Shown in pieces: positions 8,621-57,325 of a DNA stretch of 64,000 bases (position 1 is the stretch's first letter; the number at the start of each line of letters is the position of its first letter). The position numbers and the translations under genes were made by a program. Origin of the DNA: Mytilus edulis (Eukaryota); assembly GCF_963676685.1 (NCBI RefSeq), contig NC_092345.1:46500001-46564000 (forward strand). The letters are read 5' to 3'. The notes beneath the pieces are model-generated. The model did not search any database. It was not told the origin of the DNA and saw only the letters and a list, made by a program, of their open reading frames with translations.

Positions 8621-9844
8621 ACAGCAGCCAAAGCTTGAATTATGAGGAGCTTTTCAATATCCATGAACCGATTTAACTGAAACAAATCTGAGTCACAACC
8701 GAGGGAAACACATGAACTTTAAAAAGAAAACAACGGAACAACAGAAACACTTTTACAAAAGAAAAGCTAACATACATACAAACGGACTCTATAACAATGG
8801 CCATATTCCTGACTTGTACTGGAGATTGTAGGACAAAGGGTGGGTTGAACCTGGTTTTATGGCTGACCAAACCTCCGTCTATATGGCAATGTTAACAAAC
8901 AGAGATGGCTCGCCCTCCTGCTATCATCAATAGTATATTTTGAAAGAGTTATTCCTTATGTTGGTTTTACCCGACTTTCTTGTCAAAGGTTAAATATATA
9001 ACAATTTTCTTAATTCACACTAGTAAACAATAAACATGTGAATGGCTATAAGTTTGTCCATTGCACCATCGGTCTCTGTCTGTGTCTATGGCCTGTACTT
9101 TTGTTTTAAATATCTTTAAATTTTGTAAGTCAAATACAAGAAGTTGTTATCGCGTATGCATTGAATATTTGGCCTTTCTCATTAGCAATTATACCACATA
9201 TTATTTTTCATATAAGCACATTATATTTTGCTCAGACGGGATGTTATGATCCCTTCCCATAGCATAAATACAGAAAAAACAACATAGAAAAGATATTTCC
9301 ACAATTGTTTTCTATCATGTATTCTTTTTGTCATGACAACCCCTTTACCGAACTGAAATTGCACTTTTCTTCAACCAGAATTACCTCAAAACATGGAGGG
9401 GTGACTTTCGGTACAGTCCTCCAAAAGAGTTTCTCATTATTTTGTTTTGTGTAGGCACATAAGCGATAAAGCTTGTTCTATACAATCTCAAAAGAGAAAA
9501 AAACAGAATTAAGTCATGTACTTGTGAAACCGTTATCTCTCATATCCCATTAGAATACATCATTTATAATTAATGACTTTGAAATGACAATGGATTCAGC
9601 ATTTGTATGCACATTTTTATTGTACCTTTTATAATTGATAAATAACGATTTGTGATTGGAATATAAATAATAGGGGTTAACATTATCTTACAAGGTCAAT
9701 GAAATGGCGAATTTCATCTAAATGAATATAAAATAAAATGTTATTATTTCATAAGGATAAGGTAATAGATAAGACATTCATTCAACACAATTGTAGAATG
9801 ATCGTGACTTATGAATTAAAGTTGGACGTGGATTATACCCAAAC

Positions 9845-12800
9845 ATGTAAGTCATTTACCTTTAGTACTCATTACAATATTGCAAATCTTATAATAAATA
9901 TCACTATTGCGATCACTTTTGTGATAATGATGGTGATCATTGTATCAGATAATAAATTATTTTTAGCACTACTTTCGTAACTGAGGAGGGACGGTTTGTT
10001 GAATTGTTTTTAATTTTAATGATAAATGCAAATATAGCTGCTTCATCTTACAGTAAATTGATGGCAAGATAAATGCTTGAAGGTGACGGTTAATAAGGAC
10101 ATCGATTCGAACGCGCACAATTAATAAAGTATTTTATTTTGTGTAAACACGACCTTTAAATTGCTACTGAGTGGAAACCATTTTATTCAAAATGCTGCAT
10201 TAGAGATTTGCTTCTACTTCCCTAATAAAGTGTACGAGTGCTTAAAAACTTGAATATTCTTCTTATAAATAACATTGCATAGCTATTTTCAATACGGATG
10301 ATTGTACAATTTTATAGTGCATTAAAAAAAATGTATTCATGTTCAGCCTTTATGTGACACAACAAAAGTATAATTTAAATGGAACCTAACTATTTTTATG
10401 TCTGCAAGGATCATTTTTTTAATCTTTACTTTTGTTTCCTCGAATCGTCAATCCTTTACATGTTTGATACTTTTGATTTTATTTTCTATTAAAAAAAAAA
10501 ACCCACAACGCCTCGATAGCCCCGTGGTAGTTTGTTTGCTTTATTTGCGATATTCAGTTTTTTTTTCTTTTTCTTTGAGAAGCTAAGGCAAGCATTTAAG
10601 GATATTAAAGAGCACGGTTTGCCAGCTAAGATTCACAATATTGCCATTGAATATATAGGAAGAGCGTCATGTAGTTCTATGGCCTGTTATCATGTGATAT
10701 AAAACGTTGTGAGACGCCTCCGTGTTTCGGTCTACTTAAATAATTGTTTTTATTTATATTTGTATCAAACTAACAGAAGGCTTGCTATATTTGCAACTAG
10801 ACGTTAAACAGTTATCTATTTGTTCATCTATTTTGAAATATACTCATGATACTGTTACAATTGAAACACATATAACAGAAACAAAAAAGTATTAGCAAAC
10901 ACAACTTAAAATTTTCCTTGATCATAAATCTTCGGGAGAAATGATAACTGTGTCAATACACAATGATAAGGATGCCTAAGTAGGTGCCACAAGTTAGGTT
11001 TGGTACAAATGGAATCCAAAACTTTTTTTTTATTTGTGTTTATATGAAACGTTACTTCTTAAATATATTTGGGTATCACTCGGTTCCTCTCGCGCATGTT
11101 ACACAATTTCTGGAAGTACTTTTAATCGTTTTAGTTAATGTCATTTTTACACCTTGACGCCCTGAAAAATATTTTGTGGACACTGCATGCTGGCAAGTAA
11201 ACCTTTCGTTGCCTTTGTAAGCTGGTCCCTGTTTTGCTTAAAGAGAGGATAAAAAATAAATATTGTGTTAAGAAATTCACCAACTTATCTTAGGAGCGTT
11301 TACCTCGATTACAATGTTTATTGCACGACTAAATGTTTTGTAACTTATTTCTTTTGGTTGTCTCCAGTACAAATCCTTGCTATAATTGCATACCAGTATG
11401 ATACCCTAAAATTAAGAACAACAATAAAAACGATATTAAGTTTTGCCAATATTTTCCCAAACTCCAATATATATGTGTTCGTACATTTGATGTAGTCCAT
11501 ATGATAAAACTGATTTAAAAACGTCTTCAATTCGCTTAATGAACTTAAAAATGTTTAAAATTGTCAAACTCTGGCTTCGTTTATTTTATCGTAATTCTGC
11601 CATCCTTGACTGATATCATACTTTCACCTTGGCACACATAACTTTGAAATAATATGTCAAAACCAGATTTCATTGATACTTATACAAGACTGAAATCTAA
11701 CAAGGACATTATGTTGTTAAGTCAAGAAGAAATCATCCAACAACATCATTATACAACATTCTTTGTTTACTATCTTTAATGAAAACTCTTTGCTAAAAAT
11801 TCGACAATAACAGTATTATTACTTTTGACAATTATAAATGACAACGCCGATAATACAAGTGAACTAAATAGGTCGGTACTTGGAAGTTTCTTAGTTGTTA
11901 TAATTTATTATTTTTTACAGTTTGTCCATGGAAGGGCGTTTGTTTAGGACGCTCACACACTCTAATGTAGCCTTAAGTCCAGTGGTAATTGTTGGTTGTT
12001 GTATGCTACAACTGTTTTATGTTAACTTAAACCAGGCCCTTTGTTTTTGTGGGGCCTACAAAGTTGTAGAAAATTAAACAGATTCGCTTTCAACATCAAA
12101 TTCTTTAAGTATCAAAAAGGAGGAAACTTAAAAAGCCAAACAACATTACAAAAAAAAACATTAAACAGTCAACCACTGACAATTTTACTGATTGCAGACC
12201 GGCACACATTTATGTGGTAGGATAAGATTGTTTTAATCTCACACCTCTCGATCAATGTCTAATAGTATGCATATACATGCAACAGTGATATACCGCAGTT
12301 CAAAAGTCACGTATCGATTAAGAGAAAACAAATCCGGGTTACAAACAATATCATATTCGTTATTGCATTAAACTATTTCAACTGCTTTGGTTGTGTTGCA
12401 TGCATATAAATAGTCATACTATAAAATACACAATCGAATTGTCTAGCAGCATTTATTTTAATTTTTAAAACTGAGGAAATAAAAAGTGTATGCATATCAA
12501 TCTTGGTTTAACTTCACTGATATTATGACAGGATTCTTATTTAATCAGTTCACTACCTTGGGTATTCTATTTTTTCAATATTAATAAGCAGGTTACTGGA
12601 TGAAATATGTATATATCGCGTTTGTGTATAAAAATTCTGTACCTTTAACTGAAGAAACATTTTTATCTAGTAATGTGCCCAACAGTTTTCATTGGCTGTC
12701 TGATTTCTTTTGGTTCTTTCATTATGTGTCATTTTAAACTTATGTAATTGTCATCATTTTTTGTCAGAATTTATTGAATTACAATTATTATTATAATTAT

Positions 12801-15800
12801 AAAAAAAACAGTTATTGTAACGCGCAAACCATAGATAACGTGAACTTTCTTATGTTCATTTAATAAGAATAAAGTATGCCTCTATAATATGCAACTTCTC
12901 ATTTATTTCAGGATGATTTACCTAGTTCTTATTACTGTAACATTAATTTCGTCAGCTGCATGTGAAAAACTATGTTTATATTGTGACCATGTACCTATTC
13001 CTCAGGATTGTTCACGTGTTGTGAGATGTGGAGCCCATGAAGTAAGCACTGATCTAGATTTGTTATTATACATGTCCTTCGATAATATACTTAAATGACG
13101 TTAAAACTGCATACCAATCAGATTTTGCAAGATACTAGGAATACAAAAAATAGCAATAACAAAAAATCGTTCTCGAAAATAATTGATTCCTTTTTAGAAC
13201 TTTTTCGCAATTTACAATGTTTAAGTACTGTCCTTACTGGTTATTAGCCATGTGCATTTCAGACTACTTACTAGTTATTTATGCCATTGCAATCCATGAA
13301 CTGTCAGTCAAAATACTCATCATAACTACGAACAAATAATTCAGATCTTAGTAAAGACTAAAATAAAACAGCAGATTAATCAAAACTTTACATTTTGATG
13401 AATTGAACTGCATTTAAGCTGACATTGTACATAATATTTTACAGGATTGTTATGTAGAAAAATTTGTTACACCTGATGGATATAAATATTATTCTTTGGG
13501 ATGTCGGGATATCGATGTAAGTTTTCATTCATTTAAATGATTGTATATTACTACCCTTGAATAACATGATCGCTGCCCTGAGGTGTTGATTTTGGTCTGG
13601 AGCTATGGTAACTCCTGTGTCAAACTCCTACTGAAGAGGAACGTTTATTGGATGTTTTTATAGATAAGCTGCTAAGTCCATTCGCATTTGGGACGTAAAT
13701 TTTGTAGCTAATATAACGATAATTTACAGATTGCCAACCACCAAACCAAATAACAACAAAATAAAAGGATCTGATCAACATGGAGTTACAAAAAACATTC
13801 GTGAGCAGGAGAGATCTCTTGTGATTCTTCCAATAGAAATTGTATGCAAAGTAAACATAGATACCAGCATGTGATACTTAGTTTTTGATGTCTAATTAAT
13901 TCATTTGCACACATACATGATGTCCTCAAAGATTAATATAATCTCAATATCAGATCATATCATTTGTTTTATGTGCACGTTTATAAATACTATCAAAGTT
14001 AAGTACTATAAATTAACCAAGCTTTATTCTCCACGTAGAAATGTTCTGGGGTATCGGCTATTGGTAAAAGGAGTTCCGGAAGCCTCGTGTTGAGGGACAA
14101 TTCACCTGTAGAAGAAGCTAACGATAATGGGGACACATCATTTTGCCGTGCATGCTGTAATGGAAAAGCCATCTGTAATGTTGACAATTTGTGTGGTTCA
14201 CCAGGTGAATAACAACTTATACCAGATGTTAAATGGAAAAAAAACATGATATAGAAAATTTAAGAAAACAAAAACAGTTCCACAAATCGATTAGATTATC
14301 TGACCTTCAAATTGATTTAACAGTATATATTACAATACAGTGTAATGGTTGTAATTCTGTAAAGATAAACTGTTTATAAGACAAAATTCGAGGCATTTTC
14401 ATTCAACACAAAGATACATACTTTAATTTCCTTTTATTCATACAGAACCAAACACATACGGCGGTCATATTTGTTTCCATTGTGAACAAGTGGAACATCC
14501 AGGAAAATGTAACAAGATAACTTTATGCGGCCAAGGTCAAGTATGTATTTTTTCTATTTTCTTGTTCTTCCTTTGCCATACTTGTAAAAAGTAAAATCAC
14601 AAAAGTACTGCACACTGAAGAAAATTCAAAACGGAAAGTCCCTAATCCAATTGAAAAAATCAAAAGCTCAAACACATCAAATGAATAGACAACAACTATC
14701 AAATTCCGGACTTGGTACACGCATTTTCTCAAATAAAATTAAGTCTGGTGTTTTTAACATTTTTTTTCCTCTATTAAGAATTTTGAGTCGAAACGAAAGT
14801 TTGTCGTATGATATTTTGATCCTGGTCTATGATGAATTTATTTACCTTATAATTCTACCTTTGAATATATGTAAAGCATTTTCTTTTAGAATTTGTTTTT
14901 TTCTAACATATCACTATTGACAAATAACATCAACTGTTTAATATTACGGACAGTATGATGTTAGAAATAGTAAATGTTTATTATTAATTTTACACTTGTT
15001 ATGCCATCATCACTTTGTAACCTCAATCACATGATCAATGGTATGTTCGACTTTGCGTGGCCACCTCATACTTTCAACGTTTTGTTAACAATACGTACTT
15101 CTCATTAACTAAGTTGTGTTCGTTATTGACAACACACCTGTTGATACTAGTGGCGCAAGGGTAAATTTTCCTTCATAAAATACGAGTTCCTCATTAATTT
15201 ACGCTGATATATCAGTAAAAAAGCCGATAAATAATTACACAAACAAAAATGAACTCGACGTAATCAAATAAATATAGTCCTAAATGGTGAGCGCCACTGA
15301 TGAGTTTACGTCGTATTGTGTTCAAAAATGCAAACTTTGTGTCCCTAGATTTTTTTATACCATTATGACTGTACATTAAAATTTGAATTGTTTTTCAACT
15401 CATTTGCAGTCTTGTAAAGTAGTCCAATACATCAACAGGTTTTCCAAGAGGCCGAATTACAGTTCCGGATGTGAAGAACGCGACGTAAGATTATACAGTC
15501 ACCTATTTGTTTTACTAAAAAGAACTGATTAGAATTCAGAATGAATTAACAAACTGACGATGCTTTATGTGAAATTAATTGTTTAGAAAGAGTTTGCTGA
15601 TAAGGCGGAATAGTATTATGAAGTCACATTGACTTCGCAATTGTTATTGGGTCCGAATAATGAAGTTTTCTGAATTGGTCCATTTTTATTGAAATAGGAG
15701 GCGAGAGATACAAAAGGGACATGTAAACGCACGTATAAATGAAGAATTTAAAGAGAATTTTCTGAACGACTAAGAAAGTATTCAGAAAAGAATGAATTGG

Positions 15801-18800
15801 ACAGGAACTACAATATGAAAAAAGCAAAAGATTCTGATACTTTATAGAAGTAGCATCATATAAGATTAACCATTTTTCGTAAAGCTTATGCTATATTGTA
15901 CTGCTTTCAAAACAGCCAAACCTTTCAAGGATTGCGTTCAATCCAGCATTAGAATGGGAATACATTAAGAAGATATTTATCTTTCATTTATAGTACAATA
16001 AAAACTGATAATGGAAATGGGAAATGTGTCAAAGAGACAACAACCCGACCAAAGAGCAGATAACAGCCGCAAACTATCAAGAAATGCACAACTTTTCCGA
16101 ATGATTTGAAATACAGACATATTGGTCGGGTTGTTGTCGCTTTGACACATTCCTCATTTCCTTTCTCGATTTTATAATGATATGATGCCCTAATGTTTTG
16201 GGTCTATTAAACATAACTAAAAAGACTTTAATACAAAAAACGGGGGAGAAAAACATACTGCGGGTATAAAGGCGATATAGTGTTTTTATCATTAATATAT
16301 TCACCTGATAATAATAGCTGCTATCACCTGATAATAATAGCTGCTATCTGTATTGTATCTTTTCAGGAGTGTAATTTACTAAATGACAGCACAGAATGTT
16401 GCGATTCAAATTTCTGTAATGATAACCTACGTACGTTTTCTTTTCCTTTCTTTATTATATTACAATTAATGTCTATTGACGTTTTATGTTGATTTTTGTA
16501 CATACGAATCGTTTTTGGTCAATACCGTTTACCATGTACTCAGCGATCAAATTTTATTATAACATTACACGTAAAACGTTAGCTAAAATATCTTTTAAAA
16601 AACGACTAAATTCCCTTATTGTGTTGTTTGTCTAACGAAAGGACTAGATTTAACAAATCAAAAGTACACATCATGAACGGCATGCATTGAACCAATTTTC
16701 TACATTATCTTTCATAATAGTTATCAAAGGTACCAGGATTATAATTCTTTACGCGTTTCGTCTACATAAGACTCATCAGTGACGCTCATATCAAAATAGT
16801 TATAAAGCCAAAAAGTACAACGTTTAAGAGCATTAAATACCCGAAATTTCAAAAAGTTGCGCCAAATACGGCTAAGGTAATCTATTTCTGGAATAAGAAA
16901 ATCCTTAGTTTTTCGAAAATTCAAAGTTTTGTAACAGTAAATTTATAAAATTGACCATATAATTGATATTCATGTCAACGCCTAAGTGCTGACTACTGGG
17001 CTGTTGATACCCTCGGGGACGAAACGTCCACCAGCAGTGGCATCGACCCAGTGGTGTAAATAGTTACATGTATCAAAGGTACCAGGATTATAATTTAATA
17101 CGCCACACGCGCGTTGCGTCTACATAAGACTCATCAGTGACGCTCAGATTAAAATAGTTATAAAGCCAAACAAGTACAAAGTTGGAGAGCATTAAATACC
17201 AAACATTTCAAAAAGTTGTGTCAAATACGGTTAAGGTAATCTATTCCTGGGATAAGAAAATCCTTAGTTTTTCGAAAAATTTAAAGTTTTGTAACAGTTA
17301 GAAAAAATCGTTTAAAACCGAATATTTGAAAGCAAAATATGTATAAGAAATAAGACAGTTTAAGCGCTTATAAATCTGTGTAATTCAAATACATAATTTC
17401 TTTGGATTTTTTTTAACTAGAGATTCCAGTTTTTAATCTCTATGCCCTCTATGGAAACTGATCTGGTTGAGGTATCTGTAAATGTTAGTATTCTGGTATT
17501 CATTTTAGCTTGCAAAGTAAGACTGAACGATAATCCAGTTCTAAGTATACCATACATAAACCAAGATGGAGATGTGAAATTTAACTGTACATTTAGGAGT
17601 TCAACATCTAGGATGGACGTTGTGTACAAAGTGTCATGGACTGTAGATGGTCACCCTTTAAAAAACAGAAAAGGAATTGATGAAGTTACTTTATTAAGTT
17701 CATACGAACGCGTTGCTATTTTAGATGCATACAATCTTAATGGAAACCTTAATAAAATGGTATATTATCACATTATAAAACCGTATAAGACACTTTTTAA
17801 ACAAGCATGCATCGTAAAGGTGTAATACCACCAAAATCATAGTATGTAACATCCAGTTGCAAACAACAAAGGGTTGAAAAATATTCTCTTTAACTTGACA
17901 TTTCGTTGCAATAAAACATTGCTTGGTCATAAACCTATACATGTTTCAAAGCATCATCTAAGTTTTAATTGTTGTTTCTATAGAATAATTTGGAAGCTTG
18001 AGCTAACATGGTTCATGAAGCTTCTTCAAAAAGTGCAATTTTACGAAGAATAATAGCGGAAAATAAATGGTGGTATGACACCTAAACGAATTAAACTTTT
18101 ATAAGCCTGGTACCTTTGATAACTATTAGTATGTCGAAATGACCTTTTGTATTGTTTATAGTGTATTTCTCTATCCTGGATGTTCTTGCATTTACTTTTA
18201 TTGTAATCCTGTCACGTAATGTTGTCATTTTAGTGTTAATTTAACATTGTTATGAAAGCGCGAGGTTTTCCTAGCCACAAAACCAGATTCAACCCACCAT
18301 TTTTTTTTTAAATGTCATGTACCAAGTTAGAATATGGTGGTTATTATCTTATAGTTCGTTGCCTTTATTTTTACCGAAAGTATGATATGAACACATCCAC
18401 GTCAATGAGACAGTCACTAAGCGATAGAAACTACTTTTATTGTCAATAAGAAATTAACACGTTGTCTTTGACAGCGGCTGGTATTTAAATTTTGACTTAA
18501 ATCGCACAATATGAATATTTAACAAATACTATTAGAGATCTACCATCATCTCCACATCTTGACAAAATTCAGTAAAATATTGTAAAACACTACCACTTAC
18601 GAGTTTCCTGATTTTGGACAGGTACATTCGAACTATAAGAAAATTGTTGAAATTTCAACCTATTTAAAAATAGATTGGTTGAATTGAAAATTGAACATAC
18701 CACATACCAGATATACAACAAAATCAAGGTTCTTTGATCAATGTGATTTTACAACAACAAAAAATTAGGATATTATGTAATTTTAAATATTGAAATCTAA

Positions 18801-21800
18801 AATTTAGCACTTTATCATCAATTCTCTACTACATATTGAATATAATTTAAGCTCCGGTGTAAGGTTGAACCACAGTGTAGTATTGGTGATCCCTTACCTG
18901 GATCACACAGTAATGGCTACTGGGTAGGAATAAAGGTAAATATTGACAAACATTTAGTTGATTAATTTATCTTCCTTGCTTAGCTGCATGTAGCAAATAT
19001 TAGGCGATATTTAGAACGACTGGGCATTACTAGTTTTGATAATAAAAAAATCGACTTTAAAAGAATTGGAAGAAAGCTATACACAATATGACAATATTTG
19101 AACAAATAATATTACGTTTCAGCTGTATGAAGTGAAGAGATTATGGGAGAAGAAAAGCAAGGAAATTAACACCAAAACGAAAACAATAATTGTAGACAGT
19201 TTCTACTGCTTAATTTATAAAGAACACAAACCTCTTACGTCGAGTACAATTAAGCAATATGAAAATATGTTCAGTTTATTTTCACTATCTTAAATGGGCG
19301 TAAGGTAAATTCTGTCCCATTACATTATTAGAACAAATTGATACCTTTCAATAATTTCAAACAATTTTTACTGAACAAATATTAGTTGTACACAAAGGCA
19401 ATGATATCTTGCCGGGTGTTGTAAATTAAGTACTCATTTCATTCATCATTTGCTTCTACAGGTATCCCCACAAAGAATATCTCATACAGTAGAACAGAAT
19501 ATAACACTGGTATCAACATTGCCAGTAGTCAGTAGTGATGGGTTACATAAACTATATGTTGGTCCACAGATAGAGAGTACAGGTATTAATGATTACTAGT
19601 TAAAACGTCGTAAAAATGTCAAATTGATAAGAGATGAAGGGATATAAGCCACTGAAATAGCGACACAACAACACAACAATACCAAAACGACATCAAGAGA
19701 TGATCAAATGATCAGCAACAACAAACATATGTCTATTTATTATGTTGGTCTCTAAATTACCCGGGTTTAATAATGAGATGCTACTCAACATGCTCAATAT
19801 ATTCCATTCAATGCCCTTTTGACCCTCAATAGAATTATAAAACTATAATAAAAATAACTAATGACTAGGTTCCTGTTTTGGAACCAGCCATTTAAATGAT
19901 ACGGAGTAAAAGATTACTAAATAAGTATACCAAACTTTTGATCTCTTGAACAAGATGTTTTTGTTCCCATCAGACTCATCAGTGGTACTCGATTTAAAAA
20001 GTGTTAAAGGCAAGATTTGATAATAATTCGAAGATCATTGCAACTTCAGGTAAAGTGAAGATCGTGTTGTTTTCCCGTTCTCTATGTAGCTTCATCTTGT
20101 AAAGCAATGGGTAAATTCATAAATTCACTTTCGATAGAAACAAAAAGAACAGAATTTCCATTTTAACAATTAAACTGATATATGAGGGAAACGATGAAAA
20201 ATAGCACCTTTAATCACTTTTAAGGCCATAAAATAGTGAATATAAAATTGAGAATAGAGTAGATAACAGCAGAAGGTCACCAATACATACTGTTTGTGTG
20301 GCACAAAAATGCTGCCTACAGTAAAATTCAGAAGCTAAATGAATTAGTAAGGAAATTAAAATAGCAAATTTCCGCTGCTGATGATAAACAAGTTATATTA
20401 TCTATTTCAGGTCAGAATTTAACTGCGTGTAAATACCCTTTTGAATGGGATCCGTTTACTAGAAAGTACATCAGTACGATACCTGTTCATATTCTGCCAC
20501 ACTCATTTTACAAGACTTCCGACAAGTTATTCTTTAGACAACTGAAGGATTTAAATTTTCCAATATTTCGGAACTACAATTTACCAATTGTTCAGATAGG
20601 AGTAAGTTTTCATTAACAATAACAATAATACAATTGAGAAAAATAACACTACAAAAAAGACTAAATGCATACATTTGTTCATCTTTATAACAATTAACGT
20701 TTTCGTATAACCTAAACAGAAATATTTAGCATAACAGAACAGCATACCACACCTGCAATATAAAAGAACAAACCATACTATGTTTGTTCCCATAGGCGAT
20801 AATCAAATACGTTTTTTAACATTTAACATAGAACTGACTATTTTTCGTAGTATTCTTGTATGAGATGAAAGTTAAAAATAAACATTTTTTAATTTAAATA
20901 TACACTCATACATATATTTTAAAAACAAACTAATCGAAAATACCATCATATTAGAAATTGGTACACATTAAGAGCCTAAAATTTCGAAAGATTTGGCCAA
21001 ATATAACTGACATTTGACAGATACTATAAATAAAATATTTTATATCATCTATGCATATTAATTTGAACTTTGGACTTTTCAAAGAGCTACATGGCCAACC
21101 ATGATGTATCCCATAGGTGTGAACTTAAGGAAGGACATGTAAACGTGTTTGACAACTTGTAAGCATTTACTTACCATTTTAGGAATATTACAAATAATTT
21201 CTTATATGAAGAGGGATATCATAAAGTCTATGCAAATACGCCGTTTTAGATTCAGAAGTGTCGGAAGTGTCATTGTTTGTATATGAAAAAGAAAATTACG
21301 TCATGACAGACGTTTAATTTCAAGTATTTAAGACGTTATTAGCTAATCCTAACGTTTTTGCATCATAATCTGAAACGACGATTTCATCTTAACAAATTAA
21401 TTCAATGAAACGAATTACACCATTAAACTTGAGGGTATGAATAGAATTACATATAAGAGTATAATGAGCGATACAAAATAACAATTAAAAAAGGATTTTT
21501 TAAAATGTGAAGAATACAGAAATAAAGAACCCATTATGACTCTCACGCTTAACAAGTGAGTTATTTCAGTAAAAACAAATTGCCGATCTGCCTATCTTTT
21601 AAACAGCAAAACTCAATATCTCCCCTTACAAAATTTATTATATGTAGTTAACCTGTGTCATCGCATTGTTAAGAGAAAAAACATGTTTGGTGTATTATGT
21701 AGGATGGAGGGTTATTTCGCTGTGTTAAGGACCTATTTGTTAACTTATGTTTTTTTTTTTGGCTCTTTGACATATATCCCATTTCCATTTTCAATTTTAT

Positions 21801-24800
21801 GATGATTCTTCATGTAGTACATTGAATAGCCAGTTGAAGGTTTTACATAGATATCTAAATACATTTGGAATAACCATTTACGCGTAGTTTTACATAAACT
21901 CACTTGAGTCTCTCCGACTAAGTTTAAAAAGACTTAAGTAAGGAAATACGAAAGGAACACGATCCTACATGCAGTACTTACAGTCATTTCAAATTGTAAT
22001 TTAACATCACTGTTTGCTAAATCAATTTTATTTGTGTTTTATTTTTTTTTTAATTTTTAGGAAAATAGATGAGACACTAGATGCCTCAGCATATTCATAT
22101 TTAGAACTTTACAAAACAACTTCCACACCCACGATTGAGGTAAGTATATTAGAACCTAGCAATAATTTACCATAGTTTTACGGATTTTTCTTTATATCAA
22201 GTACCACTGAAGCAAACATTACGTCAAGAACTTCGACTTTATCTGTTCCTAATTATTACTTTGATGTCACGGAATATTTATGTTTCAGTAACAAATAGGA
22301 AGAAAACATTTGCCAATTGAATGTAGCTTAACAACTGTTACTCATTACATCCTCCAGGGCATCTGAGAAGTAAAGAAAGTGGTTCCAATTACAAATCGTA
22401 AAATTAAGAGAATCTTAGATGGAAATATCAAATGTAGAACATTATAAATAATGGTTAATGCTAACGAATACAATTGTGTTAGTATTTATTATCAGCTGTA
22501 ACACTAAGCAATTACTTAATACACATGTATCCTTCATTTTAAATAAACGTTAGAACAATTTACTGTGACAATTCATTTATATATCACTTTGTCAGTAAAT
22601 GTATCTCATAAAATACACAGGTCCAAGTAAAAAGACAACCTTGTGGCAATAAAAACTGCTCTTGTGCAATCATTGTTCGTGAAGGGAACGACGCCGTACA
22701 AATAGATACCTGCGGGCAGACAACATCAATTATCCCAGAAGTTACGTATTTATCAAACACTTCGGAAAAACACATGAGCATGCACCAAACAGATGACGGA
22801 TTATTTTTTCGCGTGAGTAAACTATTAGCATTGTTTTGTCATGTGTATTTACAATTGCGGCAGTTTTACGAACGCTTATGACAATCTGAGTCGGTTCTTT
22901 ATATAGTACTTTCATTATGTTAAATATGCATTTACGCTGTGAACTAAACTTTCAAAAAAGTAATTAACACATAAGCATTATTCCTGTAAACTACTTGTAA
23001 GTACACTTTTTTTCCAACTGCTATGGTAGTTAATCGTATTTAATAAACTCATCATAGATACCAAGATTAAATTTCGTATTTAAGCCAGACGCGTGTTTCG
23101 TCTACAAAAGACTCATCAGTGACGCTCGAATTTAAAAAAGTTAAAAAGGCCAAATAAAGTACGAAGTTGAAGAGCATTGAGGACCCTTACAGTCCACTCA
23201 AAACCTTTGTTATACGAGACATGCTAATGTTAGTTTACTTTTTCTTTAACATTGTACATGTTATATAAAGGTTATCAAGCAATAGCATGGCAAAACTATT
23301 TAATTGCATTATTCTTCATCGAAAATGGCTTGAAATGTTTTTTGTAACATCCAATTACTAGTAGTATAGTACACTTATTTTCTTGTTCATTTAACTAAAA
23401 TTTACAGAATTTATTAAACGGTTATATATTAAAACTAGTGTATACATATGAGCACATATTTCACTTGAATAATACTCATTTGTTGGTTTTTGAGTTACGT
23501 TCGTCATAAATTACAGGTCACAGTATTGTCTGGTTCAAATATAACAGTAAATTTGACCGGGTCGGATCCAGACATGCATGTAGTGTTGTCGATCTTAGAC
23601 CAAGACAAGAATCCTCCTGGCGGGATTTGTGGGAATGAAACATGGTTATTTATACCTGGTATTGGAAATGTAGCAGCAAATGGTCAAAAGGAACCAGAAT
23701 TTCTTAAAGCATGGACGTAAGTATCTCATCATTACACCTTTCATTTTTTTCATTAAGTTTATTATGGCACTTGTTTTCTACATTTTTTCTACTCCTTATT
23801 TCATATATAAAGTTAAATCTTTGTTGTTGGACTTTACAAACCAGACTATTAAGGAAGTAGATTATTTATATTTTTTTTATATTATTTAATGGTTTTGTAC
23901 CGACCGAAAGCTCTGGGAAATTGTATTAACTAGGAAAGTCCCTTGTCAAATTGCAAAATCAAAAGCTCAAAAGTCGAAAATGGTGGATTAAAACCTCGTT
24001 TTAGAGCTAGCTATACCTTTCACTTATTTGACCATCAGATGAAGTATGCAACTTCTATGGATAGAATTTCATTATCTTGACAACCTTTTGTTAACAAAAC
24101 AAACAGAGATAACAGGAACAATGTCAAAAAGATGGGTACAGCAGTAAACGTTGTTTATTTTAATCACAATTAAAATAATTTAATATGTCAACAAAGAACA
24201 ACAAAATGGCATATAGACAAAACACATTAGCAAAAATAAAAAACAGGAATACAAAATATGACTATATTTTATTGGCGGAATATATAAGTACCTAGCCACG
24301 ACAACAGACTATTGCCAACAATGAACTAAACATTAAAGGTTATACTTTATAAATAAGACAAATAAAAGAACACTTTTACACGTTAGCAAGATAATACACT
24401 ACGTAAAAAACATATTTACTGAACTTCAATACCATCGAGTGTTATTTGTGAAGTTGATACGGAATATTTAAAAAAAGGTCTTCGTATCTTCCAAATAGTT
24501 TTACATAGTTTGATTATTGCGATTCATAACTGCATTTTAACTATATTACGAAATGTTAAACTTGGTATTTCGATATCCATGCCAAAGCTATAGGGTCATG
24601 TGGTATTTACAGACATTGTTGATTCGATTTTTTTCAAAAATATTAATCACAAACATTGTCTTCCAATCAGTGGAGCATACACTTCAGTGTTATCCAAAAT
24701 CTTCTCCCCTAAATGGGCCCTTCATGATGACGTGTTTTTATTTATTAACGAAATGTCCTATAAACGATATGATCAAATCAGTTGAGTTATTGAAGGTAAA

Positions 24801-25750
24801 ATATTCGGATCCTCTAATGAAATTTGAAAAAAAATACCGTCAAGGAATCATTTTTATAAGGTATTTGATAATGTTTCTTACATTTTTGTCACGATTAATA
24901 CGAAATGAATTTCGGATGGCTCATCTTTGTCCGAAAACTCAACACCGGTTATGCTATTACTGTCGATAGGGTAATAACAAATAATTGACTGTGTGTCCCC
25001 GCTGATGATAAAAATAGTAATTTGGTACTGGATTAAATGAAATTTATATCTCGTTATGAAATTTAGAAATTATTTTTATATTCCGCTGATGTTTAGATCT
25101 AATTATTAGTTTGGGTATGGTTATATTATTGATCCTTTTTAAAATCGGGTTTGGATTTTAATAAACAAAGTAAAGACATGTTTGTATGTCGACATACGCA
25201 TGTGGAGCAGTAACATTCATACCACGAAAGGCATAGTTAACTAAAACTTTGAAGTCGTTTGCACCAAACAACTGCACTTCATTATATTCTTCATTTATTT
25301 AAAGGTTGTTTGTATTTATATCTTAATTTATTCTAATTTTCCTGGTTGAAAAAGTTTTTTTTATCAAATTTGATCTTGCTAAATTATTAGAATTTTCAAA
25401 TAAAAATATGACACATTGAAGCTATTTTATATATACCTATTCTCAATATAAATCATTAACAAAACCAAAATGTGAATAAATCGTTTCAATCATTGTGAAA
25501 TAACAACAGCAAAACGACAAGAAATGAAGTTATTCTACGAATGCAGTTGGGTGAATAAGAAAGATGAAAGGTCATGTTATTTATCTATAGTAACTGAATG
25601 TAGTTTTGTTTTAAAATTTCTAATTTCAGTTTACCACAGAATGCAAGCATGTTCAAAACTGGTATTTCTTTTGATCAAAATAACAGCATAACAGATATTG
25701 GGTATTGTAAATGTGAAGGACCAAACATAACTTGTGGAACCGTCATATGA
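9845..25750 (+). CDS. Gene copy A: secreted protein, signal peptide + 2 Ly6/uPAR-like Cys-rich domains + VWDE-like Ig-like region + VWD domain (~638 aa, intact)
   Basis: Exons, all AG..GT and phase-compatible: E1 ..9846 (AT), 12912-13041, 13445-13516, 14039-14204, 14446-14540, 15410-15484, 16367-16430, 17509-17759, 18852-18935, 19462-19582, 20411-20601, 21085-21158, 22061-22139, 22621-22812, 23517-23716, 25630-25750 (TGA). Total 1917 nt with no internal stop. Motifs: MMIYLVLITVTLISSAAC; CLYC..CCNGKAICN; CFHC..CCDSNFCN; FNCTF..VSW; SNGYWVGIK; VQVKRQPCG..CSCAIIVREGND..IDTC; GGICGN; F..AW..NASMF..YCKC. Every exon has a conserved counterpart in copy B. Confidence 0.88.
16716..17300 (-). mobile_element. 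Non-LTR retrozyme-like tandem repeat (about 1.6 copies of a 358-bp unit) with two minimal hammerhead ribozymes, inserted in intron 7 of copy A
   Basis: Repeated unit (actcatcagtgacgctc at 16771 and 17129). Minus strand: gcgtca-CTGATGA-gtct-tatgt-agac-GAAA/GCAA-c-gcgc-g..tggcg. Absent from the paralogous intron of B (ctttcat|cagaatcgtttaaa at ~41887). Confidence 0.8.
23083..23125 (-). ncRNA. Minimal type-I hammerhead ribozyme with intact catalytic core (in a ~140-bp repeat fragment, 23045-23186)
   Basis: Minus strand: gtca-CTGATGA-gtct-tttgt-agac-GAAA-c-acgc-GTC|tggc. Stem I gtca/tggc, stem II gtct/agac, 2-bp stem III. Confidence 0.8.
23935..24520 (-). mobile_element. Degenerate Penelope-like 3' end plus common interspersed repeat (paralogous copy at 49585-50150)
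   Basis: The minus strand near 24420-24495 reads GRYEDL..KYSVSTSQITLDGIEV, similar to the RT C-terminus GRHHELVGRYGITVSQMILD at 47552-47630. Confidence 0.4.
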
Positions 25751-28700
25751 AAAATAAAAAATAAATGAACAAAATATAGCCATACTTATTATGGTCAGGT
25801 TACAGAAAATGGGTCAAAGATTTTGTTTTTGAATACACATGCCTTATGTTAATCTTGAACAAAGAAAAATAATGCATTTGTCTCTTTTATTTTTTGAAAT
25901 GTTGTCGTACCCATTCTTTTGAAATAGATTTGTTTTTAAAGCTCATAAAATGGGTGAAACGCGTTATCAAAATACACAAAATATGTATGTCTGCATGTCT
26001 GCATGTCTGTATTGCCGTCTTCTTTCATATGACATGATAACATGTAATATCACAACTTGCAATAGATGCTTGTATCATAAAACTTTACATAAGATTGCTT
26101 TCGGAATGAATGATTGCAAAAAGGTATAACAAAAATACCAGAAAATTTACATGAATGACAAGGTGACAACTTAAATTGCTAAATAACAAAAAAAACACGC
26201 TGCTCAACAATCATTACAACATAGAAAATAAACGAACTAATGCTATGAATTGCCTCTATGATTGTTTTTGATATACTAGCATTCGAAATAGATAGAAACG
26301 TTTGCGCGTACAAGTTGTGTCTGTATATTTCATATTTGAAATCTATGTTTAGAAATAAATTTCTAACTGTATTAAAATTCCGCAAATACGTTATAAATGT
26401 TTAGAGAATGATTATGATTTCATTATAGATACCAGGATTGAAAATTTTTACAACTAAGGAAGATTCATTAGTTATGCTCGAGTACAAAATGGTATTAACA
26501 ATATATGTATTCTTTAAAATTCTGCGGAACTTCTGGATAGTTTTTATTTCAGTCTGTTTCTGAAATTAACTCTAACATAACTTTTGATTTTTTAACCTTG
26601 CACACCACCATTCCCTGTGAAATTATAATTGTTTTGAATATACATTAAACGACAAAATTTCTTCATATGTAACGTTTACATTTTCTGACGCCAAACACGC
26701 GAAACAATGAATGTGTTTTTTTTAATTTGATAGATGCTTTTTTGTAAATGTTTGTTTGTTTTGAGATTGTAACACAGTGATGACTGCTGTAATTATTTTG
26801 TGAATATTTGATGATGCGACTGTCATATAAGTGAGAGGCTTAGCGCTATACAACCAGGTTCAATCCACAATTTTCCACATTTGAAAATGCCTGTACCAAA
26901 TCAGGAATATGACAGTTGTTGTCCATTCGTTTGATGTGTTTTATCATTTGATTTTACCATTTGATTAGGTACTTTCCGTTTTGACTTTTCCTCGGAGTTA
27001 AGTGGTTTTGTGATTTCACTTTTTAAAAGGTGTTTTAAATAAACGTTAGCTTTTCAATTGTTTAAATTCATCGTCTAACAAATTGACAAACGAGAAACAT
27101 AGGTAATAAGGTTATATACGGGGATCAAAAGTCGAGACAAGGTATGCTTTTTCCCACGGTGTCGATGGCATCGGCGGTTTAAGCGTAGTCAACCATGTAG
27201 TATGTTGTTTTGAGGTCAGTTAATGGGAACCACTAATTGTAAATCAATGATATTTATCATGCAGTTGTATTAGCATAATCTTGTCTCATTTTCATGGTGA
27301 TTATTTGGCCCCGCATCTTAGGTTTTCGAAAATACCGCTCTGCTCTTGTCATGTGAAATTTTAGTACAGAAATGTTGTCTTTTCGTGAATATTACAATTA
27401 CAATTTCGTGACTGAAGGCAATGAGACATTAAGATTTGCCTTGTACTCCGTCTGTTCTTGTATCTGTCTTCATTTCCGTCACTTCTTACGTCCGTTCGTC
27501 CAATTTTAGTTTCAGCACTCGAATTCAAGTTTTCCTGGTCTTTATTTTATGAAACTGATACACAATGATTGGAACCATAAGTCCGAATTTGGTCAGTGAG
27601 CTATATACCGTTTTATAGTTATCGTCTTTTTTAACTTAGCAAGTTTCGACATTGTAACTTCACATCCATATTTTGTGAAACTCATATTCTATGATTTGAA
27701 CCACGACAAGCAGACAGAGTTCGAATTTGGGCAGTGAGTCATTTACCGTTCATAGATCGTTCTGGACTTGTGCTTTATTTTGTTTAGAATATTAGGTTTA
27801 AATGGTGGTTTTCGTGTACTTAGACACATTATTCTTTTATATATATATACAATTTAAAGAAAGGATTGTCTCAATTTCTGCACATATATTACAATCTTCT
27901 TTAAAATCTATTCACATTCAGTGTTAAAATCGGGATAAGTTCCATTGAAATTGCTCACTTCATAATCGTTAATCTTTGCTGCATATCAATCGGTTCCTTT
28001 GGGAATTTTTTACATGAACTTTTCTGATGTAGATGCATTTATAAACGGATACGAATTCTAGAGATGTATACAACCAGCATAAACGTAAATTGAAGTAGCT
28101 ACTATAGGATTTTATTTGAATATCAACGTTTTTACACAAAGGTCATTCAACCATCAGTACTCGACGTTTGGTATTTCTGGAGGTAAATGAAAATATTACA
28201 TGGAAAATATGTTTTATTTCAATGAAATTTTTACTATGTATTGAAAAGAAAACAGGTTCTTAATAGGTAGAATATAATTTTGTCCGACAGAATTCACCTT
28301 ACCTTCTACATGTATCAATTTTAAGTACTCTACTGATCTCATAGTCGACACGTTCATTATGGAAGTTGTAAAAAAAATATCTAAAGAAAATTTATTAGCA
28401 ATTTTAATTTTTTCATTATCAAACATATTTTTTAAATGAATGACCACCTTAAGTAGAAGTTACATCCGTGGTTCAAGTTGTACTGCCAAGAATATTTTGT
28501 GCATGTGAGAAGGTTCCGATCGGCTTTTGTGACCGTTTAAAATATCTAATAATGTACTTAAATGTAGTTTTTTTTTCTTTCTCTTTCTTGAAAAAAAAAT
28601 GAAAAGAAAAAATCGTCTAGGTTCAATACATTCAATAACAAGCAACTTAAAACAACTCCCTCTGTGTTGTTTCGATGCGCGTTCTACAATACTGTTCATT

Positions 28701-31364: not shown

Positions 31365-32608
31365 AATCATATGTTTTTCAGATAAGAAGTGTCTTTTTTG
31401 TCATTGTTTTCCTGGAACTAGTTTGATTTCAGGCAACAAAAGACAGGATGCAGTATATTTGTAGTATTAAATGTCATCTTGGTATAAAATTGAAATTACA
31501 TAATTTAACATAGAAAGCAATGAGCTATGCATAAATAGTTAATTCCTTAAGTTTTGGGATCATTTATACGTACTACGATATCATTGAGATATTTGAGTAT
31601 TTGGTTATTTGTAAAATTTTTGAAATGAACTTTGTTTTCATAGGATAAATGTACACTTACAGAAGAACATAGTTAATGTCTTGATGTATTAAGCGCCATA
31701 CAAACATCAATGAAGAACAGAAAAATATAATCAACAAGCATCACAAAATATAAGGGTTATAGGGTGTAGTAGCGTGTATGTAATAATCGTGAATAAGATA
31801 TTGTTTTACGTTGAACGCTTTTATGGCAATATTGAATATACTGCTAAAATGACATAATTACATGACATGACAGGAATACAGTACAAAAAATGCAAGTACA
31901 TTCAGGACAGAGAAACACATAAATCACCCAATTATTGCATAGCATCAAATATGCATTAATCGGCTCCCATTATTATACATTTTCTTTCTTAAATTGAAAT
32001 TGAAAGTGCTATCATAAAAAAGTAAGGTTCAGAAAATGAATGAATCTTTCGTATGTTTTATATTGTCGATGAGTTAAAAGTACATATTCGTCGATTTTAC
32101 CGCTGAATGATTGATCTTTTACTATTTAGAGACAGAAGCTAGTTTACCAGTGTAGCGGTTGAAAACTTTTATGAATAATCTATGGCCCGACTCTGAGGTT
32201 CTAAGTAACAAGCAGAATATACCAAAGCCCGTCAGACGTAATAGCAACCTAGGGCACATAGTGATGGACTTTTCCTGCGAACTGTAAAAATAGTAAGGCG
32301 TTGTTGTCGACCTATATGATTTGTCTGTGAATCTGTTGATAAAAAATGGTTATTCTGCCTCACATCTTTAAAATGGACGAATGTAGTTGTCTGATAGGTA
32401 AATAACGTCATCATGATGAGGACCTCCTGCTAGGCTGATCCGGTCTTTTAACATTGCCGTGAAATTTTCAACTAGATTCACATGAATATAGGTTACTACT
32501 GTTTTTTTGTCAGTTATCTAACAAGGTTATTAGGTAATAGATAAAACATTGCACTAATGAAATGATCGTGATTTACGGATCAATGTGAGACGAAGATTAT
32601 AACCAAGC

Positions 32609-35600
32609 ATGTAAGTCATTCGCTAAAATAAGTACTGTGGATTCATTATTATTCGTTGGGTACCATTTTTTTGTGGGAACAGGTTAACCATGAATTCAAA
32701 TCTTCAACGAATAACAAATTTCCTATTGGTTTTTATGCAGAGACTGGACAAAGCACAAAACCAAAATATCAGTGCAAATGTAAGTTTTCATCAATCCACG
32801 AAATGTGATACCCACGAAAATAAATGAATACACAGTTCTAAACTTTAGTATTTTTGATGAGTTTTATTATTTCTAATTAAGGTAAACATTAAACAAATTG
32901 GAATGTATATTACATACGACATTTTAATGCTGAAAGGCAATTTTCAACGCGGCGTTTTCAAGTCTATATAATGTTACATTCCACATCACAGTTTTTTTCC
33001 AGTCAGTTTTATTTTTCACTCTATTAAATATATATATATAAAAAGTCCTTTAACAAGACCACGTTACAATTATCATCGAATGCAATTTCCGACTAATAAA
33101 CAGGTTTTAACTTTTAATGGACAAAACAAGAGGTTCCTAAAATGAAGCATTTCATCCTTCAGAGCTGGTCTTAGTTCATTTTCTGTATTTGTTAGAATCT
33201 GCTACTGTACATTTTAGTTGGTGGCTGGGGAAAGCGTTGCGTTTTCTTGTGATAATTTTTATAATTCGGTCTAATCTTCATTAATTAGACAGAAGAAAGA
33301 TTGTGCTTTTCATATCCGTATATAATGCACATTATCTTAAAAATAGCTTAACCTTATGTTCATACTAATAGAACAAGTAAGTTTTGAAGATAACAAACAG
33401 TATCATTCACTTCAGGAAAATATTCCGATTTCTTATTACTGTATCATTGATTTCGTCAGCGGAAGGTGGAAATCTGTGTCTATATTGTGACCATGCACTA
33501 ATTCCGCAGGATTGTGCACGTGTTGTTAGGTGTAAAGCTGACGAAGTAAGTACTATATACTAGTATACGTCTCAAAGAACCTATTTGATAATTGTCGGTG
33601 TTATATTTTGTTGACAGAAGTATTTCAAATCAATATCTCGCAAAATATAGTTGAGGTAATTTGAGTACCTTTTTACATTTGTAACACAAAAATATGAGAG
33701 TGTAAGTGGGGTAAATAAATGAGTCAAGAACATTGAAAAGTTTTTTTTACGATTAAAGTTAAAAGGTTTGATAAAACATATTCATATTCAAGATGTTATT
33801 ATTTTGAAAACTACCATTTATGACGGGCTTTTAAAACTTGTACATGTGATTGAAACACATGACAAGTCAAGATACTCAATGAGGCTAACGTCACTTAGTT
33901 CACATTTAAGTAAAGACTAAGATAAAACCAACAGATGATAGAAAACCATGACACTTTCATGAATTCCAACTGACAATAAACAATATATTTTACAGGATTG
34001 CTTTGTAGACAAGTTTGTTACACCTGATGGATATAAATACTACTCTTTGGGGTGTCTGCATAAAAATGTAAGTTTTCATTCATTTTCTTGACTATTTATC
34101 AACTTCCTTGAAAAAGTATTAAAAATCTTCATGTTTGCTTTGCTAATATGTGGTATGTTATAGAACTAAGGTAACTCCGGAACTTATAGCAGTAAAATTT
34201 ATACTGAAGAGGAGCGTCTGATTGGCCGTTCGGAATGGGGACGTTAATTGTGTACTCTATGTAACTAAAGCTAACTGATTGTAAGTCACCAGATTGGTAA
34301 AAAAGCAAAACGAAAAAGAGTATTCTGTTAACCAGGACCAAATATAAAAAAAAGAAGATGTGGCATGATTGAAAACGAGACAACTCTCCACAAGAGACCA
34401 AAATGACACTCAACTTTACAGCTATAGGTCACCGTATGGCCTTCTACAATGAGCAAAGCCCATACCGCATGCATAGTCAGCTATAAAAGGCCCTGAAATG
34501 ACAACAATTCAAACAAGAAAACTAACGGCCTTATTGGTGTACAAAAAAGAACGGAAGACAAAAAAGATAACTCATAAACAAACAATAATCACTGAATTAC
34601 AGGCTCCTGACCTGGGACAGGCACAAAGTATGGATTCACAAGCAGGCGACTTCTGATGTTTCTTTTAATGAATATGTCATGTAAAATAACACAGATACCC
34701 GCATACGATGGTTAGATTTTATGGCCTGATTCATTTGCACAGTTGCAAGATCCTGTCAGATATTTACATTATCGCGATATCTAATCCTGTTCCTAGTAAT
34801 CTGTGATCGTTTCTAAATACTGTAAAACAAATATGGTAGTAATATAGCCAAATCTTTATTCTCTGTGTAGCAATGTCCTGGAACTACGGCTATTGGAAAA
34901 AGGAGTAACGAAAGCATTGTTTTGAGAGACAACATTCCTGTAAATGCAAACGACACATTATTTTGCCGTGCCTGTTGCCACGAGAAACCCATCTGCAATA
35001 GTGACAACTTGTGTGGCTCACCAGGTGACTAACAACTAAAATAGATATAAGTATTAGATAAATGTGCATGAGATGTTGCCTGCTTGTGAATGCATACTTT
35101 GTGCCTGTCCCAAGTCAGGAGCCTGTAATTTAGTGGTTGTCATTTGTTTATGTGTTACATATTTGTTTTTCGTTCAGTTTTTGTACACAAATAAGGCCGT
35201 TATTCTGTGCTCGTTTATAACTACAGTCAACATTATATTAATAAATTAACCAAGTCGTCATTTATTCTCTACGTAGAAATGTTCTTGAGCTTCGGCTATT
35301 AGTAGACGGAGTAACGCAAGCCTTGTGTTGAGAAACAATATCCCCAACGACAATAGCGACTCATCAGTTTGCCATGCCTGCTGCAATGGGAAAGCTATCT
35401 GCAATGTTGACAATGTGTGTGTTTCACCGGGTGATTTACACGAATGTAGACGTACTTGATAAAGAACAAAAAATTATAAAAACCTAATTATTCCTCCAAC
35501 TGTTTAGGGTTTCTCACCTGTATAAAATTCAAATTGTTTAAACTTACTTATAAATTAAGGGACGGTGCATTATTTATCAAGCAGGGGGACCGGTGCAAAT

Positions 35601-56899: not shown

Positions 56900-57325
56900 A
56901 TGTGAAGGATCGAGACTATCTTGTGGAACTATCATATAGCAAATAAAACTGAATGAATAAAATATAGCTACACTTTTTATGGTCAAGTTACAGAAAAATG
57001 GCTCACATATTTTGTTTTGCATATAACTGCCTTAAGTTAATTTTGAACAAAGAAATTAAAAAAAGTGAACCTTTGTATGCAAATGGGTGAAAAAGTTTGT
57101 CAAAATTCATTGAATATGTATACTGGAATGTCTGCATGTCCGTTTTCTTTCTTTCTACGACATAAAACAAAACATGAAGTGTTTATGTTTTATGCAGATA
57201 AATTAACCCGATGATCCAAAACATTTGCTGCTCAACAATCATACCAACAATGAAAGTAAAGAGCTCATGCTATGATTTGCCTGCATGATTATTTTTGATT
57301 TACTTGCATTCAAAACAGATAATAA

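Follow-up and report, generated by a model that had tools for sequence, protein, structure and literature searches.

A sixteen-exon gene of Mytilus edulis joins two Ly6/uPAR-like domains to a VWDE-type Ig-VWD block in a predicted secreted protein

Does one mussel gene join two domains of the three-finger, Ly6/uPAR-like type (hereafter LU domains) to an Ig-VWD block of the kind found in VWDE proteins, and if so, what might its product do and how did the two halves come together? The question is raised by a stretch of 64,000 nucleotides of the Mytilus edulis genome (NCBI RefSeq assembly GCF_963676685.1, contig NC_092345.1, positions 46,500,001 to 46,564,000 of the forward strand; this whole stretch is called the window), which is AT-rich with a G+C content of about 31%. 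An earlier sequence-only reading of the window had proposed a hidden 16-exon gene, and we find that this gene is real and expressed. It lies on the plus strand at 9846-25750 and consists of 15 coding exons and a 5' exon, which were rebuilt from stop-free stretches and splice sites. All exon borders are canonical GT..AG, the coding lengths total 1917 nt, and the six codons split by introns read ATG, GAA, CCT, GGT, TTG and ACT, with no stop codon in the frame. The same product is listed by NCBI as XP_071153517.1 (P0070), an "uncharacterized protein" of 638 amino acids from M. edulis, in which the translations of 15 of the 15 coding exons recur exactly, in order and without gaps. Moreover, the residues that stand between these translations (M, E, P, G, L and T) are those of the split codons, and the hand-built model is thus identical to that of NCBI. 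The 16 exons and the stop-free frame of 1917 nt that had been proposed are therefore recovered at the same length and exon by exon. The description of the gene as hidden applies to the open reading frame track, which the earlier reading said misses it almost entirely, although the list behind that track shows pieces of exons 2, 8 and 14; it does not apply to the NCBI annotation, which includes the gene.

Evidence that both halves are carried by one transcript comes from assembled RNA contigs of runs X3, X2 and X14, which belong to three studies and were compared with positions 12850-18849 only. The spliced contigs contain the GT..AG joints 13041>13445, 13516>14039, 14204>14446 (listed as 14201>14443 with a cut of +3), 14540>15410, 15484>16367 and 16430>17509, the last of which links the LU exons to the Ig exon and is present in all three runs. 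In run X3, positions 212-341 of a single contig of 2156 nt correspond to 12912-13041 and positions 814-1064 to 17509-17759, which places the three-finger exons and the Ig exon on one spliced RNA. Exons 2-7 and 8-16 are thus not the separate transcripts whose existence the sequence-only reading had left to be checked. The length of this contig equals a leader of 211 nt, the 1915 nt from 12912 to the stop codon and a 3' untranslated region (UTR) of about 30 nt; exon 16 ends with the stop codon TGA (25748-25750), and two AATAAA polyadenylation signals follow directly at 25754-25766 on the plus strand. This arithmetic, together with the position of the AATAAA signals, is consistent with the full set of exons and a 3' UTR of 30 nt. 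RNA depth is modest (10-35), and about one tenth of the words sampled from a 10-kb stretch, which is approximately the share of the exons, occurs in many RNA-like runs.

The start of the coding sequence is itself split by an intron. The 3' part of exon 1, which is 5' UTR (9744-9846, plus strand), ends in AT (9845-9846), the first two bases of the start codon, and is followed by the donor GTAAGT, while the G of this codon opens exon 2 at 12912. Position 9744 marks the start of a conserved block and not the 5' end of exon 1; the RNA contigs contain 47-211 nt upstream of 12912. The split start codon is deduced from three observations: XP_071153517.1 begins with Met-Met; the block 9744-9856 is conserved in a tandem paralogue (at 32514-32620), where it likewise ends AT|GTAAGT; and the codon that follows the split ATG in the paralogue is AAA, which leaves the split ATG as the sole possible start there. 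Two other solutions were ruled out. Exon 2 does not begin with the ATG at 12889, since RNA contigs of three runs enter it at the acceptor 12912, and a donor for exon 1 at 9976 would end in TC rather than AT, whereas the conserved block and a perfect GTAAGT donor are found at 9846. Further downstream, a short form in which an inner donor of exon 11 at 20525 is joined to exon 13 at 22061 without exon 12, as in P0002, is in frame and lacks the start of the VWD domain. We rejected it as the main model in favour of the long form, which agrees with canonical VWDE, with RefSeq and with the contig-length arithmetic; the short form may possibly represent a minor isoform. In addition, the public models P0021 and P0023 lack exon 14 (22621-22812), which is symmetric with phase 0 at both ends, and this, like P0002, suggests that alternative forms may exist.

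The 638-residue product very probably has the order signal peptide, LU, LU, Ig_VWDE, a second beta-sandwich and VWD, and is devoid of EGF repeats, a membrane span and a glycosylphosphatidylinositol (GPI) signal. A hydrophobicity scan found the sole strongly hydrophobic window at the N-terminus, from which a signal peptide and hence a secreted protein are predicted; at the other end, the final 20 residues are polar. The chain stops 13 residues past YCKC with no hydrophobic tail. The domain order proposed before, without EGF, transmembrane or GPI elements, is borne out. The chain contains 37 Cys and 13 N-glycosylation sequons. The orthologue P0019 has an even number of Cys (36); gene 1, as we call the gene described here, carries one extra Cys (codon 12961-12963) at the predicted end of the signal peptide, which is absent from the paralogue and the orthologues and makes the total odd. 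If this residue remains in the mature chain, the gene 1 product may possibly bear a free thiol.

The LU half is encoded by exons 2-7, all on the plus strand, and each domain is divided over three exons; the two introns inside LU1 match those inside LU2 in position and phase. Exon 2 (12912-13041; P0070 residues 2-44, with RNA contig pieces beginning at 12912 in three runs) supplies the last base of the start codon and encodes the signal peptide together with the conserved Cys 1-4 of LU1. Exon 3 (13445-13516; residues 45-68) encodes the middle of LU1 and is bordered by the joints from 13041 and to 14039. Exon 4 (14039-14204; residues 69-123) encodes its last third, with a long Gly-Lys-Arg loop and the CCxxxxCN end, and stops in phase 1. 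Within LU2, the first third (CxxC..C..C) is encoded by exon 5 (14446-14540; residues 125-155), the middle by exon 6 (15410-15484; residues 156-180) and the end (C..CCxxxxCN) by exon 7 (16367-16430; residues 181-201), which again stops in phase 1; RNA joints flank all three exons. There are 10 Cys in LU2 and 12 conserved Cys in LU1, and both domains have a CCxxxxCN end, in agreement with the patterns read from the sequence earlier apart from the one extra Cys at the signal-peptide border. Across species, none of the 22 framework Cys of the pair varies among five family members. The two domains also align with each other over their first six Cys (hhalign, probability 88.8%, E 2.5e-6). The long loop within the last third of LU1 varies in length and sequence, and within it the Gly and the final Arg of a G-(K/R)-R motif are invariant in 5 of 5 aligned members.

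Profile comparisons point specifically, at borderline values, to Ly6/uPAR proteins. When the LU-region profile of the five members was compared with the PDB, only four sequences appeared at E<10, namely PSCA (0.0025), GPIHBP1 (0.051 and 0.12) and SLURP1 (0.16), and these borderline matches all span the whole of LU2. Toxin_TOLIP (PF00087) matched four of the five members (best E 0.0035; 18 bits, E 0.005, against a cut-off of 21.2), and UPAR_LY6 (PF00021) matched two of the five below its cut-off (E 0.13); LU1 matched neither of these Pfam models. An AlphaFold model of P0019 shows beta strands at residues 131-178, albeit with a predicted local distance difference test (pLDDT) score of about 50 or lower. 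We therefore describe the domains as LU-like on the basis of their Cys pattern and of specific yet borderline, sub-threshold profile matches. LU2 shares the 10-Cys pattern and the CCxxxxCN end with Ly6/uPAR proteins such as PSCA, GPIHBP1, SLURP1 and CD59, and the tandem arrangement with flanking phase-1 introns is a further likeness; proteins with more than one LU domain include uPAR and the two-LU gamma-type PLA2 inhibitors. In contrast to Ly6/uPAR proteins, the mussel domains score below the Pfam threshold and are each divided over three exons, and LU1 has 12 Cys and a long inserted Gly-Lys/Arg-Arg loop. Furthermore, while Ly6/uPAR proteins are usually small or GPI-anchored, the mussel LU pair forms the head of a predicted secreted multidomain protein of 638 residues.

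The remaining exons, also on the plus strand, encode the Ig-VWD half. Exon 8 (17509-17759), found on the same RNA contig as the LU exons, holds the main part of the Ig_VWDE domain, and exon 9 (18852-18935; residues 286-313), which is 100% identical in the paralogue, holds its end, where the GIK ending expected of the Ig-like region reads ..GYWVGIK. Exons 10 and 11 (19462-19582 and 20411-20601; residues 314-417) align with VWDE of C. gigas and encode a stretch between Ig and VWD that structural models suggest is a second beta-sandwich. Exons 12-16 (21085-21158, 22061-22139, 22621-22812, 23517-23716 and 25630-25750; residues 418-638) encode the VWD domain with its KEGH motif and the YCKC..C tail. 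Exon 8 alone matches the Pfam model Ig_VWDE (PF25776) at 8.7e-5 and 22.8 bits, below the cut-off of 28.1 bits; Ig_VWDE was the top Pfam match every time, at 21.4-22.8 bits against that cut-off. When exon 8 was searched against 1.84 billion representatives, only 18 proteins were returned, the nearest from Mytilus and the rest VWDE-like proteins of bivalves. P0017 is one of the latter; its relatives go under the name VWDE-like and match the D8C, Ig_VWDE, VWD and EGF models. BLASTP of P0019 against C. gigas VWDE (P0037) gave 1e-41 over residues 197-633, a span of 437 residues with 28% identity. In P0019, the stretch 428-580 aligns onto the VWD domains (PF00094) of P0035 and P0037 that pass Pfam, the one of P0037 at 1.8e-10. 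These alignments argue that the Ig-VWD half is homologous to bivalve VWDE.

Modelled structures extend this to the fold of the VWD domain. In a model of the C-terminal fragment P0024, built with 26 aligned relatives, the VWD core reaches a pLDDT of 73-86 and matches MUC5AC, MUC2, MUC5B, VWF and FCGBP with a Foldseek probability of 1.00; VIA-align gave Z 12-13.8 and a root-mean-square deviation of 3.0-3.7 A over about 150 residues, far above the Ig-type matches at Z 6-7. By these models the C-terminal half is predicted to fold as a VWD domain. Residues 25-135 of P0024 match Ig V domains weakly (Z 6.5-7), and in the full-length AlphaFold model of P0019 (mean pLDDT 47.6) the Ig domain reaches 70-83. 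Foldseek with this low-confidence full-length model returned only generic tandem Ig/FN3 matches, and a sequence profile of the whole family compared with the PDB gave only spurious polyubiquitin sums. Of the two folds expected from the sequence-only reading, structure searches thus recover the VWD fold; for the candidate three-finger fold, the LU model stays at the low scores given above.

Comparison with known VWD proteins indicates what is shared and what has changed. The bivalve VWDE-like proteins have in common with the mussel gene Ig_VWDE, the linker sandwich, VWD with its Cys framework, and the borders and phases of the Ig exon. They differ in that the mussel gene has two LU domains instead of a D8C (uromodulin-like) head, and KEGH or an equivalent in the LU-Ig-VWD family in place of the GDPH of canonical bivalve VWD; in addition, the mussel protein lacks an EGF- or teneurin-type tail. 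Pfam found no D8C (PF23283) in the gene 1 protein, whereas this domain is present in P0017, P0028, P0035 and P0036; likewise, in the place where relatives carry PF23106, PF25024 or PF18720, the mussel gene has its stop codon and AATAAA. The VWD domains of gel-forming mucins, VWF and FCGBP share the fold at an identity of only 12-19%, and the partial VWD of RGMB shares it at Z 9.7. The mussel protein differs from the mucins, VWF and FCGBP in lacking the C8, TIL and E modules and the GDPH site, at which RGM, FCGBP and the MUC2 C-terminus cleave themselves. The relation to vertebrate VWDE extends to the Ig-VWD core family only, and runs via the bivalve VWDE-like proteins. In the axolotl, growth of the blastema during regeneration of a limb depends on VWDE (PMC7390686); planarian Equinox has only the EGF part in common with VWDE (PMC9117669). 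The mussel protein lacks the EGF repeats that define VWDE, so that a role in regeneration is not transferable to it.

How the two halves came together is suggested by the introns between them. Both the LU1|LU2 intron and the LU2|Ig intron are in phase 1. In a canonical VWDE-like gene of the same genome (C12:29.25 Mb; 29244000-29253999, minus strand), the Ig exon also has a phase-1 acceptor, nine residues before a conserved Pro-Val-Leu, and a phase-0 donor after ..G-K-x, and these positions are the same as in exon 8. This correspondence indicates that an LU cassette was joined at a pre-existing intron of a VWDE-type gene, and it strengthens the earlier proposal of exon shuffling at the phase-1 LU|Ig border. 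Searching the genome with the LU-pair profile gave about 45 exon matches, most of them at C11:55.8-56.1 Mb, where the cluster C11:55780073-56118227 holds at least 25 matches at E<0.01; further matches lie on C11 at 63.3 Mb and at 70.2-71.0 Mb. When canonical VWD exons were sought beside the LU cluster of C11, none turned up. The C11 cluster is an expanded mussel LU family and likely the source of the cassette. We infer from the intron positions and phases that the LU-LU/VWDE join arose by exon shuffling: a two-domain LU cassette with a phase-1 end would have come from the expanded LU family and been spliced onto the phase-1 intron before the Ig exon, replacing the D8C head of a VWDE-type gene; the EGF tail would then have been lost, and the VWD domain would have lost its GDPH self-cleavage motif.

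The fused gene belongs to a small family. There are three LU-LU-Ig-VWD loci in the genome: gene 1, the tandem paralogue at 32.5-57 kb of the window, and a copy at C2:27.15-27.18 Mb, on the contig that also contains the window, that is 77-98% identical to M. edulis XP_071155094.1. By tblastn and blastn, the tandem paralogue (32514-56936, plus strand) has the same order of exons, is of the orthologue type of M. galloprovincialis LOC143063786 and has the N-terminus of P0019. Relatives came from six species, all of the genus Mytilus. Those that bear LU domains were found only in M. edulis, M. galloprovincialis, M. trossulus and M. coruscus, and the M. californianus relative is a model starting inside exon 9. 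Provisionally, then, the family appears to be restricted to Mytilus; the qualification reflects word-indexed searches of limited reach, within which the lineage-specific family foreseen by the sequence-only reading holds.

Between the tandem copies, the synonymous divergence (dS) falls about tenfold along the gene, from about 0.53 in LU1 to 0.18 in LU2 and 0.05 in Ig-VWD. The ratio of nonsynonymous to synonymous divergence (dN/dS) is 0.30 in exons 2-3 of LU1, 0.18 in LU2 and 0.35 in Ig-VWD, and these values of 0.18-0.35 indicate purifying rather than diversifying selection. Positive selection on the LU head was ruled out, as dN/dS is below 0.5 everywhere and the contrast between head and scaffold is due to synonymous divergence. 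Introns and exons at 18358-24931 are 94-96% identical to 43148-50608, in contrast to the 5' halves of the paralogues at 70-85%. Together, the fall in dS and the near-identical 3' introns suggest that the 3' half was homogenised by gene conversion or by a later partial duplication. The paralogue also shows several irregularities of its own. Its Gly-Lys-Arg exon is duplicated, with an intact copy at 34871-35023 and one with an in-frame TGA at 35277-35429. Extra copies of exons 14/15 lie at 51567-51755, 52785-52973 and 53711-53908, and an insert of about 70 nt is present at the acceptor of exon 13 (46898-46968). The two halves of the last exon (56828-56881 and 56877-56936) are in different frames, which suggests an indel.

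Some results weigh against a single secreted LU-LU-Ig-VWD protein with a role of its own. No Pfam model reaches its curated cut-off on the gene 1 protein (Ig_VWDE 21.4 against 28.1 bits, Toxin_TOLIP 18 against 21.2, no hit for VWD), and the LU region of the AlphaFold model has a pLDDT below 50, too unreliable to support a three-finger fold. Raw RNA reads of run X21, which carries another species label, gave zero cover on the exons, and expression is thus not universal; the read evidence for junctions reaches 17759 only. One could ask whether a small LU-LU gene and an adjacent, truncated gene of the VWDE-like type have been joined by read-through, by contig assembly or by gene predictors. In keeping with this, some database models are without the LU part (P0021 opens with 23 unrelated residues and P0024 begins inside exon 9), and a contig assembled across two genes would not prove a single transcript. 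However, the joint 16430>17509, which three runs of separate studies share, is a clean GT..AG splice and keeps the frame through a phase-1 codon; there is no stop, start or signal peptide at the LU/Ig border; and the same fusion is modelled in M. edulis, M. galloprovincialis, M. trossulus and M. coruscus as well as at three loci of this genome, all of which makes two genes most improbable. We consider it just as far-fetched that gene 1 is a decaying or non-functional duplicate, transcribed without a role. The family is young and lineage-restricted, and the adjoining paralogue, with its stop-bearing duplicated exon, extra exons and possible frame break in the last exon, may look like such a case, but gene 1 has an intact frame of 1917 nt and canonical splice sites, a dN/dS of 0.18-0.35 against the paralogue, 22 of 22 framework Cys of the LU pair invariant across species, and spliced RNA in runs of several studies.

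What the protein does is a matter for tentative proposals. Our own, possible although short of probable, is that it may act as a soluble, heavily disulfide-bonded and N-glycosylated extracellular binder, with the LU pair as its head and a non-cleaving Ig-VWD scaffold. The LU pair would be the ligand-binding part, as LU domains are elsewhere; the Gly-Lys/Arg-Arg loop could form the binding tip, or else a convertase site whose use would leave two disulfide-linked chains; and the conserved Ig-VWD block, unable to cleave itself, would dock the LU head to matrix, mucus or a partner. A structural role is also conceivable, in which the VWD block would drive assembly of a polymer or matrix in byssus, shell or mucus and the LU domains would be mere spacers. 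The VWD fold is nearest to gel-forming mucins and FCGBP, the protein is Cys-rich with many glycosylation sequons, and at least 125 VWD exon matches in the genome make VWD proteins a common mussel building block. We nevertheless regard a structural role as rather unlikely, given that the protein has neither the GDPH nor any of the C8, TIL and CK modules used by VWD proteins that polymerise or cross-link, that the even 36 Cys of the orthologue offer no obvious free Cys for polymerisation, and that the RNA depth of 10-35 is modest. A somewhat more doubtful suggestion, made from the sequence of the LU1 loop, is that the protein may be a precursor in which a convertase cut at Gly-Lys/Arg-Arg would release or activate a fragment, either an amidated peptide or a two-chain LU. 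That 5 of 5 members keep the Gly and the closing Arg, separated by either Lys or Arg, while the loop otherwise varies would fit such a cut, yet the site lies inside a disulfide-locked domain, where cutting would free no peptide, and its conservation is equally compatible with the binding tip of an extracellular binder.

Apart from the coding exons, the introns of gene 1 contain transcribed repeats. In introns 6 and 7, at 15850-16250 and 16650-17450, RNA contigs reach depths of tens of thousands, raw reads of run X21 lie on both strands, and many joints go back by about 340-360 (for example 17292>16933); these units, which the sequence-only reading had termed retrozyme-like, are highly expressed tandem or circular repeat RNAs. 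A further repeat at 14450-14850 (intron 5) has an RNA depth of 80-2000 and copies at 58761-58918 and 59982-60126. Searching the repeat-rich introns against Rfam returned no family at E 0.01.

The combination of domains appears to be undescribed, in that the literature searches brought up no paper that pairs LU with VWD or VWDE, while the protein itself was already predicted by NCBI without a name. The earlier statement that no protein of this architecture is described thus stands for the literature and needs amending for the databases, as the identical protein and its orthologues are held in RefSeq and UniProt as uncharacterized. No long-standing open question is touched by this result, and the combination is new rather than startling. 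The locus does provide a clean case of exon shuffling in an animal, and one that can be dated: the intron that received the cassette still exists at the same residue and in the same phase in a gene of the parental type, the genome contains many relatives of the cassette itself, and the product is both expressed and conserved within one genus. Moreover, it gives an identity to a family of three genes for secreted mussel proteins that are annotated only as "uncharacterized", and the LU head, the Gly-Lys/Arg-Arg loop and the GDPH-less VWD domain are handles for their study. More broadly, although we think it rather improbable, the LU-LU cassette with its Gly-Lys/Arg-Arg finger loop could be a portable, interchangeable recognition head that has been spliced in phase 1 onto different extracellular scaffolds, the VWDE core among them. 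If this were true, the mussel genes would represent a lineage-specific, diversifying family whose products serve as secreted receptors or adhesion factors, either in immunity or in dealing with byssus or mucus; the scaffold would be kept uniform by gene conversion as the 5' head diverges.

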